A stretch of 63,949 nt of DNA, the filler included, from Reticulomyxa filosa (Eukaryota > Protista > Foraminifera): assembly GCA_000512085.1 (NCBI GenBank). It is 16 parts of 16 records of this genome, joined end to end, with 100 filler letters (N's around TTAATTAATTAA, not from the genome) between each part and the next. Parts side by side here need not be neighbours in the genome. Positions count along the whole stretch, not along the records: positions 14,585 to 26,174 come from ASPP01008946.1; 15 more parts are not named here. One strand, written 5' to 3'. Shown here in pieces: positions 17,424-25,498 of this stretch. The position numbers and the translations under genes were made by a program. Under the pieces are notes generated by a model that did not search any database, was not told the DNA's origin, and saw only the letters and a program-made list of their open reading frames with translations. Within the stretch, counting starts at the first letter, position 1. The number at the start of each line of letters is the position of its first letter.

Positions 17424-19706
17424 ATGTCGTTCAAAGCGTATATTAAGGAGAATTTGAAGGAGTATACAATAATGTTGGAGGAACTGACAGTCAAAAACTT
17501 GCAATGCCAAATCAGGCAAGTTACTGGGCCAACGTCAAACGACGAAACGTCAATGGACATTACTGACGAAGATGGCTGTTATATCAAAACTGATAAAGAT
17601 GTGGTGGACGCTTTTAAAAAAGATTCTGTATTTTTTACCGTTCATGTTCGATCAAGTTTTGATATTTTTGTTTTAATATCAGTTTTGGTTTTGATGCAAA
17701 GATCAAAAAAATATACTAACAGAGCTCGAATCGAAAGAGGAAATAGATGAAAAAAGGCAAACAACATTGTCATGTGAAGTAAAAAATCCATTGATATTAT
17801 TGACTGGAGCAATGCGATATGAACAACATGCATATTTGGAAGGTGCAAAACAAGATATATATTTATTGCGAGCATTGTTTGAACAAGGCTTTGGTTATCA
17901 AGTATTCAGTACATTTGATCCTCAAAATTCAATTACTGAATCGCTCACCTCAAATGGATTGAATGCTTTCATTTACGAACATTGTGCAAATCTGACAAAT
18001 AATGCCAACAGCCAAACTGCCTATGATGGACTTATATTTGTTTGGTGTGGATATGGAGGATTTGATATTGATAGCAATACATTAATAACAAGTGACAACA
18101 AAACCAAATATTTTAAAGACATCCAACAAATTTGTATGACAAAAACTCAATTCCTTGTGGAAAAACCAAAGGTATTCATAAACATTACATATAGACAGCC
18201 GAATGGAACAAATTATATCAAAAATAAAAGTAATGTAGAAGAACAAAATGTTCAAAATCAACCATGGCATCATTGTAATGCAAAAGCATTTACCATTTTT
18301 GCAAATGTCATTGAAAGAGTAATTACCAATAGTTTTGAAAATAAAAGTGAAAATGCAAAAAGAGAAAGTTATTTCACTGAAGCTTTTTGTCAAATCGCTA
18401 AACAAAATGCAGACAAGAGTTTGAAATTTATTTTCGAGCAAGTTACAAATTCCATACTAGATCCAACATTTAGCACAGAAGTCGTCGAAACAATTCCAGC
18501 ATCTTATTTTGATATATATTTGACACCAAGACTACGTTCTGATAAACAAGAAATACAGTCAGTTACAAACGATCCTGTTGTAGAAACTTTGGATTTTAAA
18601 AAGCACTGGAATAGAGATTGGAAGAAATCAAATGCAGAAGCAGCCAGAAGGCTCAAGCAAATGATCAAAGACAATGAACAAGGGTTGATTATTATCGCCA
18701 AAAGTATTTCTGAATTGCAAGCCACAACAGATTCAAATTTGGTAAGAATCGATCGTGATGCGTCTTCATTCATCGCTTTGATAAATAACAGCAAAACTGA
18801 AAAAAAACATTTGGGGAATATTCGATGTATGTGGTCAAAAGTAAATTGGTGATATTGGATCAAGTGAATATTGATGGAAATGTGCTTTCAGTCAATTGTG
18901 AACTTCAATGCAAAGAAAATACCAATATTACAACTCAATTGTTTGTTACAAAAAATAGTATTGTTCATTGTAAGTGTATCTCACCGATTCAATGGGACTC
19001 CACATTACATCATGATATTCCGGTACAATTACAAAATCTTCAAAACCAAGCTAATTATTGTTCAGAAAATACACTCTTTGATGGTGCAATTCTTCATTTG
19101 CAGACAGCTTTGCAAATTTCTATGGACACGTTTGGATTAAATCATCCTCATGTTGCCGATTTCTGCAACAATATTGGAAATGCATATAGCAAAAAAGGAC
19201 GCCATTCCAAAGCAATCGAATGCTATAAAAAAACATTGAAAATCTATTTGTCCATTTTTGGAAGTGTTCATTCACACGTTGCTGATTTATACTATAATTT
19301 AGGGCGTGTTTATAAAAAAAAAGGGGATTATGACAAATCAATTGAATTCTACGAAAAGGCATTAAAAATATACTTGCAGTTATTTGGCATCAATCACATT
19401 GACATTGCTGAGACTTATAACAATTTAGGCAATGCATATAGCGGGAGGGGTAATCATGACAAATCGATTGATTGCCATCAAAAGGCACTGAAAATAAGAA
19501 AAGAATTCTTTGGAAATACAAATCAAGGGGTTGGAGATTCATGTTGGAATTTGGGATTGGTGCTTGAGAAATCAGCAGAAAAAAAGACTGCATGTGAATA
19601 TTTTGAAGAATCATGGAGAATATACAGTATTGTCTTGGGAGAATGGGATGAAGTAACATTGCAAGCAAAAGAAAAGGTAATAAAACTGAGCAAAGAGCTT
19701 ATATGA
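17424..19706 (+). CDS. PB1/CIDE-N-like domain + catalytically inactive caspase-like (C14-fold) domain + TPR array
   Basis: Exon 1 17424-17655, intron 17656-17722. Caspase-fold motifs NPLILLTGAMRY..LEGAKQDI..L..LF, YDGLIFVWCGYG, KPKVFINITYR, ESYFTEAF. C-terminal kinesin-light-chain-type TPRs (HPHVADFCNNIGNAY...). 1-nt frameshift in the A-run near 18800-18807. Confidence 0.8.
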
Positions 19707-20294: not shown

Positions 20295-23285
20295 CTACTT
20301 AATGTATTGTTTCACAAATTTTAAAACCCTTGAGCCCGACGTTGTCAATTCCACGTTTGTAAATGCACTCGCCCAAGTGGAATGATATTGAATATTTCCA
20401 CAAAAGACCAGTACTGGACAACTCAGCTTTAATTCATCGCGAACCCTTGCTAAAAAAATTTTAGCCTGTTCTGCTCCATTTGTGATTACAACAGTACTGT
20501 CACTTTTGGCTTTTCGCACTTTCAAAATGTTTATTGCTGCCTCAGTAGTAGTAGCGCAGTACAACATACCGTGCAAATTTTTCAAATATTCTTGTATGTT
20601 TTTGCAAACTCCAGAATTTTCAGAATTTTCAATCTTGGTATCTCTCCTGTAATTCACATTCAAGACAAACGTAAGAGAAATCATAACATGAAGTGACACA
20701 TCAAGAACACAAAAAACTTACCACACCACAATTGGCATTTTAACGCTCAAAGTAACAGTGAAAACAGGTAAAAGAGGACGACCATCACGAATGCAATATT
20801 CGTCATAAATAAGATCACCAGAAATTGAACCGTTGGAATTAACACGTACGTAGTGAGAATCAAAACCAGAAGTGATTTCTTGACCATCCATGCGGTGGTC
20901 AATCTCTTTGATTTTCCCACAATTGGCAAGGAAACACAACATAGTAAAAGTGCCAGGACGAATCTTTTGATCCTCTTTGTAAGCCCAAGCGTAATAAGCA
21001 GCATATCGAGGAAAAGAAGTGAAATAATGACCTTTGCCATACCAACCATTATCGGTTTTACTAATTTGGTTAAGACCCAAATCAAGGATGTCTAGTAAAG
21101 TAAATAATTATGTAATTATGATAAAAAAAAAGAAAAATAAACACAAAAAAAAATTTAAAACTTGGTATATTTTTCAATCTAGTGGCTTTAAATAATGCCA
21201 TTGAATCGTGATAATCCTCATTTTTGTGTATTTGCAAAAATTGATTTTTAAGTGTTTCATTATATACAATAACAACACTTGTAATTTCAAATTCCTCAGG
21301 ACCTTGTTTAAGAGAGTCAAGAACAATAGGTTGTAATTCTTCCGTTTTTTTAGCAAGCCATTTTTCGAATTCAGATAAAGAATGTAAATCAATTTTAGAT
21401 TGTATATTAGGGAAAGGATTAACAGTAGAGGATTTACTTATAAAGTAATCAACCATATCTGCCTTTTTAATAATTTTAACATCTACTCCAGGAAATACAC
21501 TATCATTTGTTGTTTCTAGTGTATCATTTATTTGTTGCACTAAATGACTACAATATACTTTTACATCAGCACCTGGTATTTTATTTTGTAAAATCTTGAA
21601 CATGACACCAATATAAGTAGAGCCACTTTCTAATGTAATCAATATTAAATGTTGTCGTGGGAAACCCATTTTCTTAGCTAATGCTTGTAAATATTCTTCT
21701 TGTTTTTCTTCAAATTCTGGCAATTCAACTGAGAGACCCCATTGAACATGGACAAAGAGAGCATCTTCAGAAGTAGAGGGAGGTATAACAGGAATAGTTG
21801 GATTATCTTCAGGTGCAGAAGAAGAAGAAATAACAGAATTAAATACAGAAAGATCTGGCTCTATTCTTTCAAATGACCAGATATTATTGTCAATAGGTAT
21901 CAATTTATCATTTAATACTGAAGCATATTTTACTGTACCATATGCCACCACTTCATCACTTTTAATTGTATCCCAAATGTAACACTTTTGTGAAATGGCT
22001 GAAACAGAAATACGAATTAATGTATTGACTTTAGGAATTACAATAGATCCACCTGCCATAATTATATCAGTAATTTGTGAGATTGGAATTTTACTTTCTT
22101 TTGATACTTGTGTAATGGCATTTATGGGTAACTTGAAAATATCATTACATAAAAATTCAAATCTTTTATATGTACATACATATATTATATTTTTTAAATA
22201 ATATTAATACACATTATACACAGACTCTACATTTTTTTCAAAACTTTTCTTGTGTCATCACTAATTCAAAATTAATTCCTTCCGTTATTGATTCTACATT
22301 TATTGTTGCTAATTTTTTGGTACTTAATTTATGCTTTAATATGTTACATGCTTTTTTTAATTTTTCCATTGCTTTTTTATTTGTTTGTATTTTAATTTGA
22401 TTTTTATTTTCAAATTCATTTATAAAATAATTCATTAATTTATCTGTATATGCATCTCCTCCTAATACTCTTACTTCTGCTTTTATTATCATTGCCTCTT
22501 CTGTTATTGATATTAATGTTACTGTAGTATTTTTTTTACCCATATTTATAACTAATACTTGTTTATTTATATTTAATTTTGTGTTTAATCCATAAGCTAT
22601 CAATGTTGCTATACTTTCATCAATTGTTATTAATGATTGTAATCCAATATTATCAGCAACAAGGGAATTTATTATTGGTTTCTGTTTATTTTATTATTAT
22701 TCATTCTCACTCTAAATATATTTATTATACATATATATATTGTTTTTTTTTTGGAGTATGTTTTTTTTTGGAGTGATATTTAATCTTTCTTTTTTAAAAA
22801 AGATTCTATACACATATAACCTTTTTTCTTTCTTTTTTTTCATCTTCTGCTTCTCCTTCTTCCGTTCCTTCCCATATCTCTGGTATTGATACTACTGCTG
22901 CTTTCATCTCCATTTCTGTATCACTCTCAATTCTTTTTTTCATATATTCTACAAATAATGATATTATTTGTTCTTTTGTTATTCCTTTTTCCATTATTTC
23001 TCTATTTATTAATTTCCATAATTCATATGTTTCTTCTTTCTTTATTCCATATACTTCAGCTTCATTTCCAAATAATACTTCTTCTTTTTTTTCTTTTCCA
23101 TCATTTTTCATTATTATATATGATGGTATACTTATTTTTACTTCTTTCTTTCCATCACTCCAAATTGCAATGCTTTTATTTGCACCAATTGATAATCCAA
23201 AACAGTGCTTTTCTACTTTTTCAATTTCTTTTAATTTCTCGTCTTCTATTGATACTTCAGAAAATGAAGCTTCAACAAGCTGCAT
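20295..23285 (-). CDS. Fusion protein: degenerate Hsp70 NBD + SEA/TRADD-N-like domain + PARP-family ADP-ribosyltransferase + receiver-like C-terminal domain; 5 exons
   Basis: Hsp70 motifs AAVVSIP, IDESIATLIAYGL, LGGDAYTDKLMNYF, MTQEKFEFLCNDIF, IIMAGGSIVIPKV, SDEVVAYGTVKYA. ART motifs LFKAT, DNGWYGKGHYFT, GFDSHYV, DEYCI..LLP. GT-AG introns at about 22682-22820, 22164-22244, 21092-21161 and 20647-20721 keep the frame. Confidence 0.8.
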
Positions 23286-23631
23286 TTCTTTTTTTTTTAA
23301 GTAATTCACAACAACAAAACAAGAATTCAGAGTCACAAGTGTAACAAACAAAAGCTCAACTGCACCCTCTTTACTCACTTTTAAAATACCATTAATTTTA
23401 CTACTTTTTCTTTTTAATAGGAATTTTTCGTCTAGAATACCAATTTGAATGTAGATAAATTTTTTAGGGAAATTAAACACTTTTAGATGCTCAAAAGACT
23501 GATTTTCGATATGAAAACCAATTTTCATCGGAATAAATATCTATTTTTAAAGTAAGTGTTATTGAGTGACATGAAGTTTTGGTCTTGAAACTTTCAGCAT
23601 GAAATAAATTAAATGAAAAAAAAGTAAATAT

Positions 23632-24300: not shown

Positions 24301-25498
24301 CTAAAAGCATCTTCTGTGCACAATACCTGGACCACTTTCATCGTACTCATCTTTTGTAATCCACATTTCCTGGAAAGTACTTAAGCTGGTCAAAATACTT
24401 CCACCAATCCAGACACTGTATTTTCTTTCGGGAGGAGCAACAATTTTTACTCGGATGCTAGCAGGAGCTAAAGTGGTCATTTCCTTGGCCAAACGGATAT
24501 CAATATTAGGGAACATTGTTGTACCTCCACTTAACACAATATTGGTGAACAAATCTCGACGGATGTCGACATCACATTTCATAATACTTTCGTAAATCAA
24601 TTTGTGAATTCCTTTGCTCTCCTTTCCAATCAGACTTGGCGAAAACAAAACCTCAGGACATCTGAAACCTTCAGCCCCGATGGTAATAACTTGTCCATCA
24701 GGCAATTCAAAGTTTTTCTCAATCTCGCTAGATGTTTCTGCTTTCTTCAATTCTGCTTGAAAGTCTTCAGCAACATAAGCCAATTTCTCCTTAATATCAC
24801 GAACGATTTCCCTTTCTGCACTGGTAGTAAAGGAATAACCCCTTTCGGTCAAAATTTTCATTAAGTACTCGGTCAAATCCCTGCCGGCCAAATCTAAGCG
24901 TAAAATTGCATGTGGCAAAGCGTACCCTTCGTAAATTGGAACTGTGTGCGATACACCATCACCAGCGTCCAATACGATACCGGTCGTTCTGCCACTTGCA
25001 TACAATGATAAGACAGCTTGGATACCTACGTACATTGAAGGCGTGTTAAAGGTCTCAAACATTATTTGAGTCATTTTTTCTCGGTTTGCCTTCGGATTCA
25101 ATGGTGCCTCCGTTAACAAAATTGCTTGTTCTTCTGGCTGGATACGTAGCTCACTATTAAAAAAAAACATGCATAAGGTACAAATTTCAAAAACGTTGTA
25201 TAAAAAAATTTTTAAGTAACTTGTAAAATGTATGATGCCAAATTTTTTCCATGTCATCCCAATTTGTCACAATACCATGTTCGATTGGGTATTTTAATTG
25301 CAAAATGCCTCTTTTGCTTTGAGCTTCATCACCAATGTATGTGCCTTTTTGGATCACACCAATCATCACGCTCTCATTTTTTGGTCTACCAACAATACTT
25401 GGAAATACTGATCGTGGAGCATCATCACCACTGAAGCCAGCTTTCACCATACCACTGCCATTATCAACAACCAATGCTTGGACAGTATCTTCGTCCAT
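24301..25498 (-). CDS. ACT: Actin (divergent), one intron 25154-25220
   Basis: [68 protein letters not shown]. The spliced junction restores HTFYNELR. Confidence 0.98.

Follow-up and report, generated by a model that had tools for sequence, protein, structure and literature searches.

The foraminiferan Reticulomyxa filosa, a freshwater amoeba-like protist, carries a gene in which the nucleotide-binding domain (NBD) of an Hsp70 chaperone is joined to a PARP-fold ADP-ribosyltransferase (ART)-like domain. The gene lies on the minus strand of contig ASPP01008946.1, at positions 20295–23285 of the window (the whole 63,949-nucleotide (nt) stretch of joined genome parts that was analysed), and the sequence there matches the reverse complement of the contig exactly. 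In order, its product comprises the Hsp70 NBD with the interdomain linker, a Ser/Pro spacer, a middle domain, the PARP-fold domain and a domain with the fold of a CheY-like receiver.

Five exons are inferred from the sequence, separated by four GT–AG introns of 70–139 nt each, which are mostly very AT-rich (GC content 0.13–0.32). The joined exons amount to 2625 nt and encode 874 amino acids followed by a stop codon; there are no internal stops, and all 874 codons are open at a GC content of 22–39% across the gene. The GenBank model (ETO24810.1), labelled only ‘heat shock protein 70 2’, agrees on all four exon joins, and the initial annotation of this locus, made by reading the sequence, had likewise spliced five exons in frame. 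That annotation had also placed the end of the NBD and the start of the ART in one uninterrupted open reading frame, correctly in that both lie in exon 3, although the frame that it quoted (21082–22059) overruns by 80 nt into intron 3 and exon 3 itself spans 21162–22162. We rejected two additions in the GenBank model: an 81-residue N-terminal extension (start at 23528), because the paralogue described below as L001 has an in-frame stop just upstream of the matching ATG, and a sixth exon, because the same paralogue stops at the codon of the exon 5 TAG. The sequences flanking the two genes have no significant similarity, which bears on these extra ends. An intronless environmental relative (L004; JGI 3300030741) is continuous over the exon 3/4 junction. 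Whole-protein analyses were run on the GenBank protein ETO24810.1 (P0002), and our own splice model was searched exon by exon; the broken copies L001 and L004 entered comparisons as separate segments, without repair.

The NBD-to-ART junction recurs on three more R. filosa contigs, giving four in total. L001 (ASPP01010588.1) contains the full set of five exons, ordered alike and interrupted by introns at corresponding sites, and is 38–68% identical per segment; a single frameshift lies in an A-run near 2426–2434, the intron 2 acceptor is doubtful, and the locus is annotated as two genes. L002 (ASPP01029445.1) encodes the NBD, the linker, a shortened middle domain and the ART; its C-terminal domain is a different one, which it shares with ETO17161.1. 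L003 (ASPP01010812.1) runs from the NBD to the start of the ART, where the contig ends. Synonymous divergence (dS) from L001, the closest paralogue, is near 1, and the ratios of non-synonymous to synonymous substitution (dN/dS) between the two genes are 0.25 for the NBD (bootstrap 0.16–0.37), 0.45 for the middle domain (0.25–0.70), 0.27 for the ART (0.14–0.41) and 0.28 for the receiver (0.15–0.44), all four intervals excluding 1. Because the junction is found on other contigs, one of them with matching exons and introns, and dN/dS is 0.25–0.45, we consider the fusion to be under selection and, as a prediction from sequence, very likely to be a real, single expressed gene. A chimeric contig was rejected as an explanation, since the same junction occurs on three other contigs, and the earlier view that the fusion is not a gene-modelling artefact is borne out.

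Exon-wise Pfam searches matched the HSP70 profile across exons 1–3 over positions 97–378 of 599, corresponding to the NBD only, and gave a weak PARP match on exon 4. In exon 1, the phosphate-1 loop is eroded, about 30 residues of subdomain IB are absent and an acidic insert is present. The structural model of the NBD nevertheless resembles Hsp70 NBDs (Foldseek TM-score 0.78) and aligns with Ssb1 over 336 residues (Z 35.7, root mean square deviation (rmsd) 2.6, 27% identity), and thus has the actin-like ATPase NBD fold of canonical Hsp70. After the linker we found no substrate-binding domain or lid, as initially annotated: on the annotated protein the Pfam match ends at 377/599, and the sequence diverges directly behind the linker. 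The W-[ST]-[FY]-[EQ] motif at the linker is taken, from the alignment of the copies, to mark the graft point. In L002 (about 1359–1435) and L003 (about 886–973), an intron directly follows this motif and is absent from the ASPP01008946.1 gene and L001; exon shuffling may have left it behind, or it may have been gained later.

The initial annotation missed two details of the ART fusion, the first of which is the middle domain that separates the NBD from the ART. Pfam and PDB searches returned no match that would assign its fold, its model is unreliable, with a predicted local distance difference test (pLDDT) score below 50 over most of its length, and its closest Atlas match scores 0.76; it may be TRADD-N/SEA-like, which the Atlas, Pfam and PDB searches did not confirm. 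The annotated protein scores 33.1 bits against Pfam PF00644 PARP (cut-off 26.7), and the ART matches PARP10 in Foldseek (E 2.5e-7, TM-score by target 0.56), which by profile and structure identifies a PARP catalytic fold, in a region of the model where pLDDT is only 35–75. The C-terminal domain is well predicted and aligns with PorX and other receivers over 108 residues (Z 13.3–14.2, rmsd 2.0–2.1) and has their (β/α)5 fold; its look-alike clusters in Atlas are rotifer-rich (0.90–0.93). Structural comparison thus matched all three folds that the initial annotation had expected, Hsp70 NBD, PARP and receiver.

Table 1 Features of the R. filosa fusion gene, in positions of the window
Feature	Position	Strand	Remarks
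Exon 1 (amino acids 1–155)	22821..23285	−	ATG at 23285; Hsp70 subdomain IA/IB
Exon 2 (amino acids 156–301)	22245..22681	−	Hsp70 IA/IIA/IIB; Pfam HSP70 E 1.3e-20; phosphate-2 loop with D199N, G202K, G203K, T204N
Exon 3 (amino acids 302–634)	21162..22162	−	NBD end, linker, Ser/Pro spacer, middle domain, ART start; contains the fusion junction
Exon 4 (amino acids 635–757)	20722..21091	−	Core of the ART, then strand 1 of the receiver-like domain
Exon 5 (amino acids 758–874)	20295..20646	−	Receiver-like domain; stop TAG 20297–20295
Pseudo-Hsp70 NBD	21904..23216	−	Spans introns 1 and 2; model pLDDT 80
IWSFE, W-[ST]-[FY]-[EQ] motif	21868..21882	−	Occupies the interdomain linker position of Hsp70; common to 4/4 R. 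filosa copies
Middle domain, ~145 residues	21325..21765	−	β-α-β ‘GS’ motif and helices; homologous to the pre-ART region in Nonionella, Bolivina and the Tara protein
PARP-fold ART-like domain	20739..21324	−	Spans intron 3; triad positions K-Y-E
Lys626-Ala627	21184..21189	−	Replaces PARP His-Gly; from alignment to relatives and PARP13
Tyr657	21024..21026	−	Second triad position, kept; invariant in relatives
Glu732	20799..20801	−	Third triad position, kept; present in all relatives
Receiver (CheY-like) fold domain	20298..20735	−	Last ~120 residues; spans intron 4; strands assigned from model

The middle, ART and receiver domains form a cassette that occurs in other foraminifera with the His-Tyr-Glu (H-Y-E) triad of PARP enzymes intact: in Nonionella stella (P0016 and P0018), in Bolivina argentea (P0045) and on a Tara Oceans contig (P0046). 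These cassettes are about 30–33% identical to that of R. filosa over roughly 450 residues and share the receiver Asn described below. None of the proteins has an Hsp70 NBD, and two have C-terminal actin-like domains, the C terminus of the B. argentea protein being the beginning of one. In the N. stella protein P0016, residues 760–1090 form a pseudo-actin behind the H-Y-E PARP cassette; its phosphate loop is eroded and an internal stretch of about 50 residues is missing. Among Atlas clusters, those whose alignment covers most of the cassette carry ubiquitin/SUMO-like or DUF285 families, at TM-scores of 0.40–0.48 that make them a lead only. Behind the ART, a domain of about 310 residues without a Pfam match occupies the place of the receiver in both L002 (2610–3623) and P0047 (118–430), the two R. 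filosa genes being 67% identical there. Because of these actin-like, ubiquitin/SUMO-like and DUF285 partners and the receiver swap in L002 and P0047, the partners of the cassette appear to be interchangeable and are often copies of conserved host proteins.

In small, midpoint-rooted trees that lacked HSPA14 sequences, the four R. filosa NBDs form one clade (support 100/100), and the R. filosa ARTs together with L004 are split from the marine H-Y-E cassettes (support 100/100). Judged from these sequences, the cassette predates the grafting of the Hsp70 NBD, and the comparisons indicate that, in the Reticulomyxa lineage, a canonical-type Hsp70 NBD was cut at the end of its linker, grafted once onto the older cassette and duplicated to at least four copies under purifying selection. 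The environmental fragment L004 (1–850) lacks introns, has Lys-Ala instead of His-Gly and is interrupted by in-frame stops, and the beginning of its receiver has decayed; it is probably a spliced transcript or a processed pseudogene of another organism, on a contig too short to show an NBD. No relative that would point to a viral or prokaryotic origin was found in viral or genome contig collections, and searches with length and word limits found no Hsp70–ART architecture outside R. filosa. A metagenome match, L008 (1611–1718), was rejected as a chance match to a seven-residue motif inside an unrelated open reading frame. In the literature, we found no description of an Hsp70-NBD/PARP fusion and no characterized protein of this architecture, in agreement with the initial annotation, and a PARP survey that includes R. 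filosa makes no mention of Hsp70 (PMC4245714). The gene therefore apparently adds an undescribed variant to the shuffled PARP-like proteins known from microbial eukaryotes. A gene model of the amphipod Trinorchestia longiramus (KAF2354849.1; P0015, residues 1–365) places a degenerate Hsp70 NBD ahead of a complete Hsp70.

The second overlooked detail is that the segment ‘LFKAT’, quoted as the start of the ART fold, is the PARP His-Gly position, with the His lost. At this strand-1 site, the present gene, L001 and L004 have Lys-Ala, L002 has Arg-Pro and L003 has Arg-Ala, so His-Gly is replaced in 4/4 NBD-linked copies and in L004, whereas it is intact in the Nonionella, Bolivina and Tara cassettes. 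The R. filosa domain thus lacks the H-Y-E (or H-Y-hydrophobic) triad with strand-1 His-Gly of the PARP/ARTD family. Searched against the PDB, the cassette profile finds its top sequence match in the inactive PARP13/ZAP (E 6e-9), which has Tyr-Ala at the His-Gly site. PARP catalysis and NAD+ binding are described as requiring H-Y-E, and ZAP is inactive owing to its departure from this triad, whereas its PARP domain is still needed for antiviral action (PMC8568172). On these residues, the R. filosa ART is probably devoid of canonical transferase activity, contrary to the NAD+-consuming effector first envisaged. Activity is nonetheless conceivable because the Glu is kept and the substitute for the His is always basic. 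The likeliest of the alternatives is the model first proposed, in which the ART is active, consumes NAD+ and is gated by the pseudo-NBD; it would be a mono-ART or an NADase that engagement of the bait switches on, with Lys or Arg standing in for His as Arg does in R-S-E ARTs. The non-random series at the His position (K, K, R, R, K), the dN/dS of the ART and the retention of H-Y-E by the sister cassettes speak for it; the requirement for H-Y-E and the loss of the Gly, which is Ala or Pro here as in PARP13 and which in PARP1 lines the pocket with the His (H862 and G863; PMC8150716), speak against it, and we regard it as unlikely.

In the NBD (Hsc70 numbering), D10S, T13A, R171I, D199N, G202K, G203K, T204N, E268N, R272H and R342V are changed and G12, E175, G201, G229–230, K271, S275, G338–S340 and D366 are retained; K71 pairs with a Lys, in a stretch that aligns poorly. 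The domain therefore does not have the phosphate-loop and Mg/catalytic residue set of canonical Hsp70, and T13, G203, T204, E268 and R342 are gone from every R. filosa copy that covers those positions. The adenosine side of the pocket (K271, S275, G338-G339-S340 and G229-G230) is retained in 4/4 copies, and basic residues have become fixed by the phosphate site (G203K/R, and Y15K in the three copies covering that position). The three eroded loop motifs of the initial annotation are present, although one of them, ‘ESIAT’, still has E175, and K271, S275, G338–S340 and D366 are kept as well. Because the phosphate-loop and Mg-site residues are gone, ATP hydrolysis is very unlikely, and we predict with high confidence that the NBD is ATPase-dead, in line with the non-catalytic role proposed earlier; weak binding of adenine nucleotides is possible.

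Such binding would be central to a second alternative, in which the NBD binds an adenine nucleotide (ATP, ADP or ADP-ribose), does not hydrolyse it and signals the energy or ADP-ribosylation state to the ART and receiver. The retained adenosine side and the fixed basic residues fit this account, but E268, R272 and R342, which we take to hold the ribose and adenine in Hsp70, are changed in all copies, and it leaves the actin or ubiquitin-like partners elsewhere unexplained. Degenerate CoCoNuT Hsp70-like domains are predicted to bind ATP and barely hydrolyse it (PMC11090510), and a role as nucleotide-responsive switches has been proposed for kinase-independent receivers (PMC8195603). On balance, a nucleotide or stress sensor of this kind seems quite improbable. 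Less probable still is a third account, that of an atypical, co-chaperone-bound Hsp70 comparable to Ssz1/HSPA14 and HSPA13, which would take the ART unit to ribosomes or a J-protein for quality-control housekeeping. The paralogue ETO22625.1 is named ‘heat shock 70 kDa protein 14’ in GenBank, subdomain IIB is the best-kept part of the NBD (36% identity), and R272H and D234T, which may be HSPA14 states, are fixed across all copies; yet the NBD is 27% identical to Ssb1 and 26% to BiP against 21% to fungal Ssz1, its top sequence matches are Hsc70/Hsp72, and a lineage-restricted, multi-copy family with swappable ends suits housekeeping poorly.

The receiver, too, departs from its canonical counterparts. 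With strands assigned from the model, Asn814 (20478–20480) occupies the place of the phospho-acceptor Asp, Cys and Thr/Ser stand at the places of the Thr/Ser after strand 4 and the Lys after strand 5, with no conserved Lys, and one Asp after strand 1 is retained, so that the phosphorylation site is incomplete. The model strongly suggests that this receiver is not phosphorylated. By its defining residues, then, the predicted protein is neither an Hsp70 chaperone nor an H-Y-E PARP nor a phosphorylatable receiver, despite having all three folds.

Starting from the observed architecture, selection and residue losses, we infer every functional step of the following scheme. The pseudo-NBD would show an Hsp70-like surface to a binder or modifier of Hsp70, for instance a factor of viral or endosymbiont origin or an enzyme that modifies Hsp70; its engagement would move the retained linker and the middle domain; and output would pass through the PARP-fold/receiver-fold unit, which would most likely be a non-catalytic or weakly active interaction platform, as ZAP-L/PARP13 or PARP9, and not a strong NAD+ sink. 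Short of an even chance, we tentatively favour such a module for surveillance or stress signalling, in which the bait is swappable and is here a pseudo-Hsp70, the ART is probably non-catalytic and the PARP/receiver unit would sooner be a scaffold than a drain on NAD+; taken separately, a bait or defence role of the fusion protein comes close to an even call. A sensor or decoy function of the NBD, as first suggested, is plausible, with indirect support from the actin-like partners of the cassette in other foraminifera. A faithful decoy for co-chaperones fits the sequences poorly, as R171, R261, E283, D285 and Y294 are changed in all copies; we take R171 to be a J-protein and allostery residue and the others to be contacts of nucleotide-exchange factors.

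Several observations weigh against the bait-and-scaffold scheme. The family is small, with at least four copies in one genome and one environmental fragment, and the TM-scores of the Atlas clusters are all below 0.5. Glu732, Tyr657 and a second Tyr never vary, and no domain is better conserved than the ART (67% identity to L001), both of which also fit an active enzyme. Fusion to debris of housekeeping genes could also be a by-product of a genome full of duplicated, decaying Hsp70 and actin genes. That the copies have lost their function or are dying out, or that each consists of two units transcribed separately, with the catalytic losses reflecting decay, is very unlikely: key residues are missing from all three recognizable domains, L001 has its frameshift and doubtful acceptor, L004 has stops and the splice model is a prediction from sequence, but 874 codons have stayed open at this GC content despite a dS near 1, the dN/dS intervals lie below 1 in four domains, identical substitutions are fixed across paralogues and the junction lies within one exon in two copies.

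Known systems offer partial parallels for a bait-and-scaffold protein. PARP13/ZAP-L and PARP9 are multidomain antiviral proteins with catalytically inactive PARP domains that share the PARP fold and an altered first triad residue, and the strand-1 motif of PARP13 also ends in Ala-Thr; however, the R. filosa protein keeps the Glu (K-Y-E as against Y-Y-V), has a pseudo-Hsp70 NBD and a pseudo-receiver as partners and is without zinc fingers, WWE or macro domains. Ssz1/HSPA14 and HSPA13 likewise place an Hsp70 NBD outside the normal ATPase and substrate cycle, and HSPA13 (STCH) also has no substrate-binding domain, but the R. filosa NBD is nearer to Ssb1 and BiP than to Ssz1, shows no signal peptide, is fused to the ART cassette and is lineage-restricted. 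Truncated or degenerate Hsp70 serves as a module in variable, defence-like proteins elsewhere: predicted GAP1-N2 systems contain an Hsp70 without a peptide-binding domain (PMC7159879), CnuD is a degenerate Hsp70 in the predicted CoCoNuT conflict system (PMC11090510), and the variable ends of oyster TRADD-N proteins are HSP70 and, in others, ART (PMC8195603). These are bacterial or animal systems in which an Hsp70 NBD and an ART in one chain are not reported, whereas the R. filosa protein has no McrB, GTPase or death domain.

In plant NLR immune receptors, an integrated decoy is a degenerate copy of a host protein that is fused to a constant module and varies among relatives. By analogy only, the Hsp70 NBD here and the actin-like domains in Nonionella and Bolivina are such copies on a constant cassette, although Pfam searches of the annotated R. 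filosa protein revealed no NB-ARC/NACHT domain or leucine-rich repeats. It is a quite unlikely extension that foraminifera have an NLR-free integrated-decoy immune family, in which the constant middle, PARP and pseudo-receiver cassette would carry disabled copies of those actin-fold ATPases that are attacked most in the cell, actin in Nonionella and Bolivina and Hsp70 in Reticulomyxa, and the Hsp70 branch would still turn over NAD+ at a non-standard K/R-Y-E active site once its bait is engaged.

Two genes adjoin the fusion gene. A divergent actin gene (24301–25498, minus strand) lies ~1 kb upstream on the same strand, probably by coincidence, and is worth noting given the actin-like fusions of the cassette in other foraminifera. 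Convergent to the fusion gene, a gene at 17767–19706 (plus strand) encodes a caspase-like domain (Pfam Peptidase_C14, E 9e-9) and, behind it, tetratricopeptide repeats (TPRs). Its coding sequence is divided between two overlapping frames, the shift being close to an A-run at about 18800; its His and Cys motif positions seem to be replaced (near 18037 and 18169), so that it looks like a pseudo-caspase–TPR protein.

Several R. filosa entries that are annotated as plain ‘heat shock protein 70’ need correcting. The H-Y-E cassettes of marine foraminifera and the K/R-Y-E cassettes of Reticulomyxa provide a natural comparison for whether a PARP fold can work without its histidine. Little has been established about the means by which microbial eukaryotes sense viruses and bacteria inside their cells, and a modular PARP cassette that acquires disabled actin or Hsp70 domains is a tangible candidate for a decoy-type sensor in organisms other than plants and animals.

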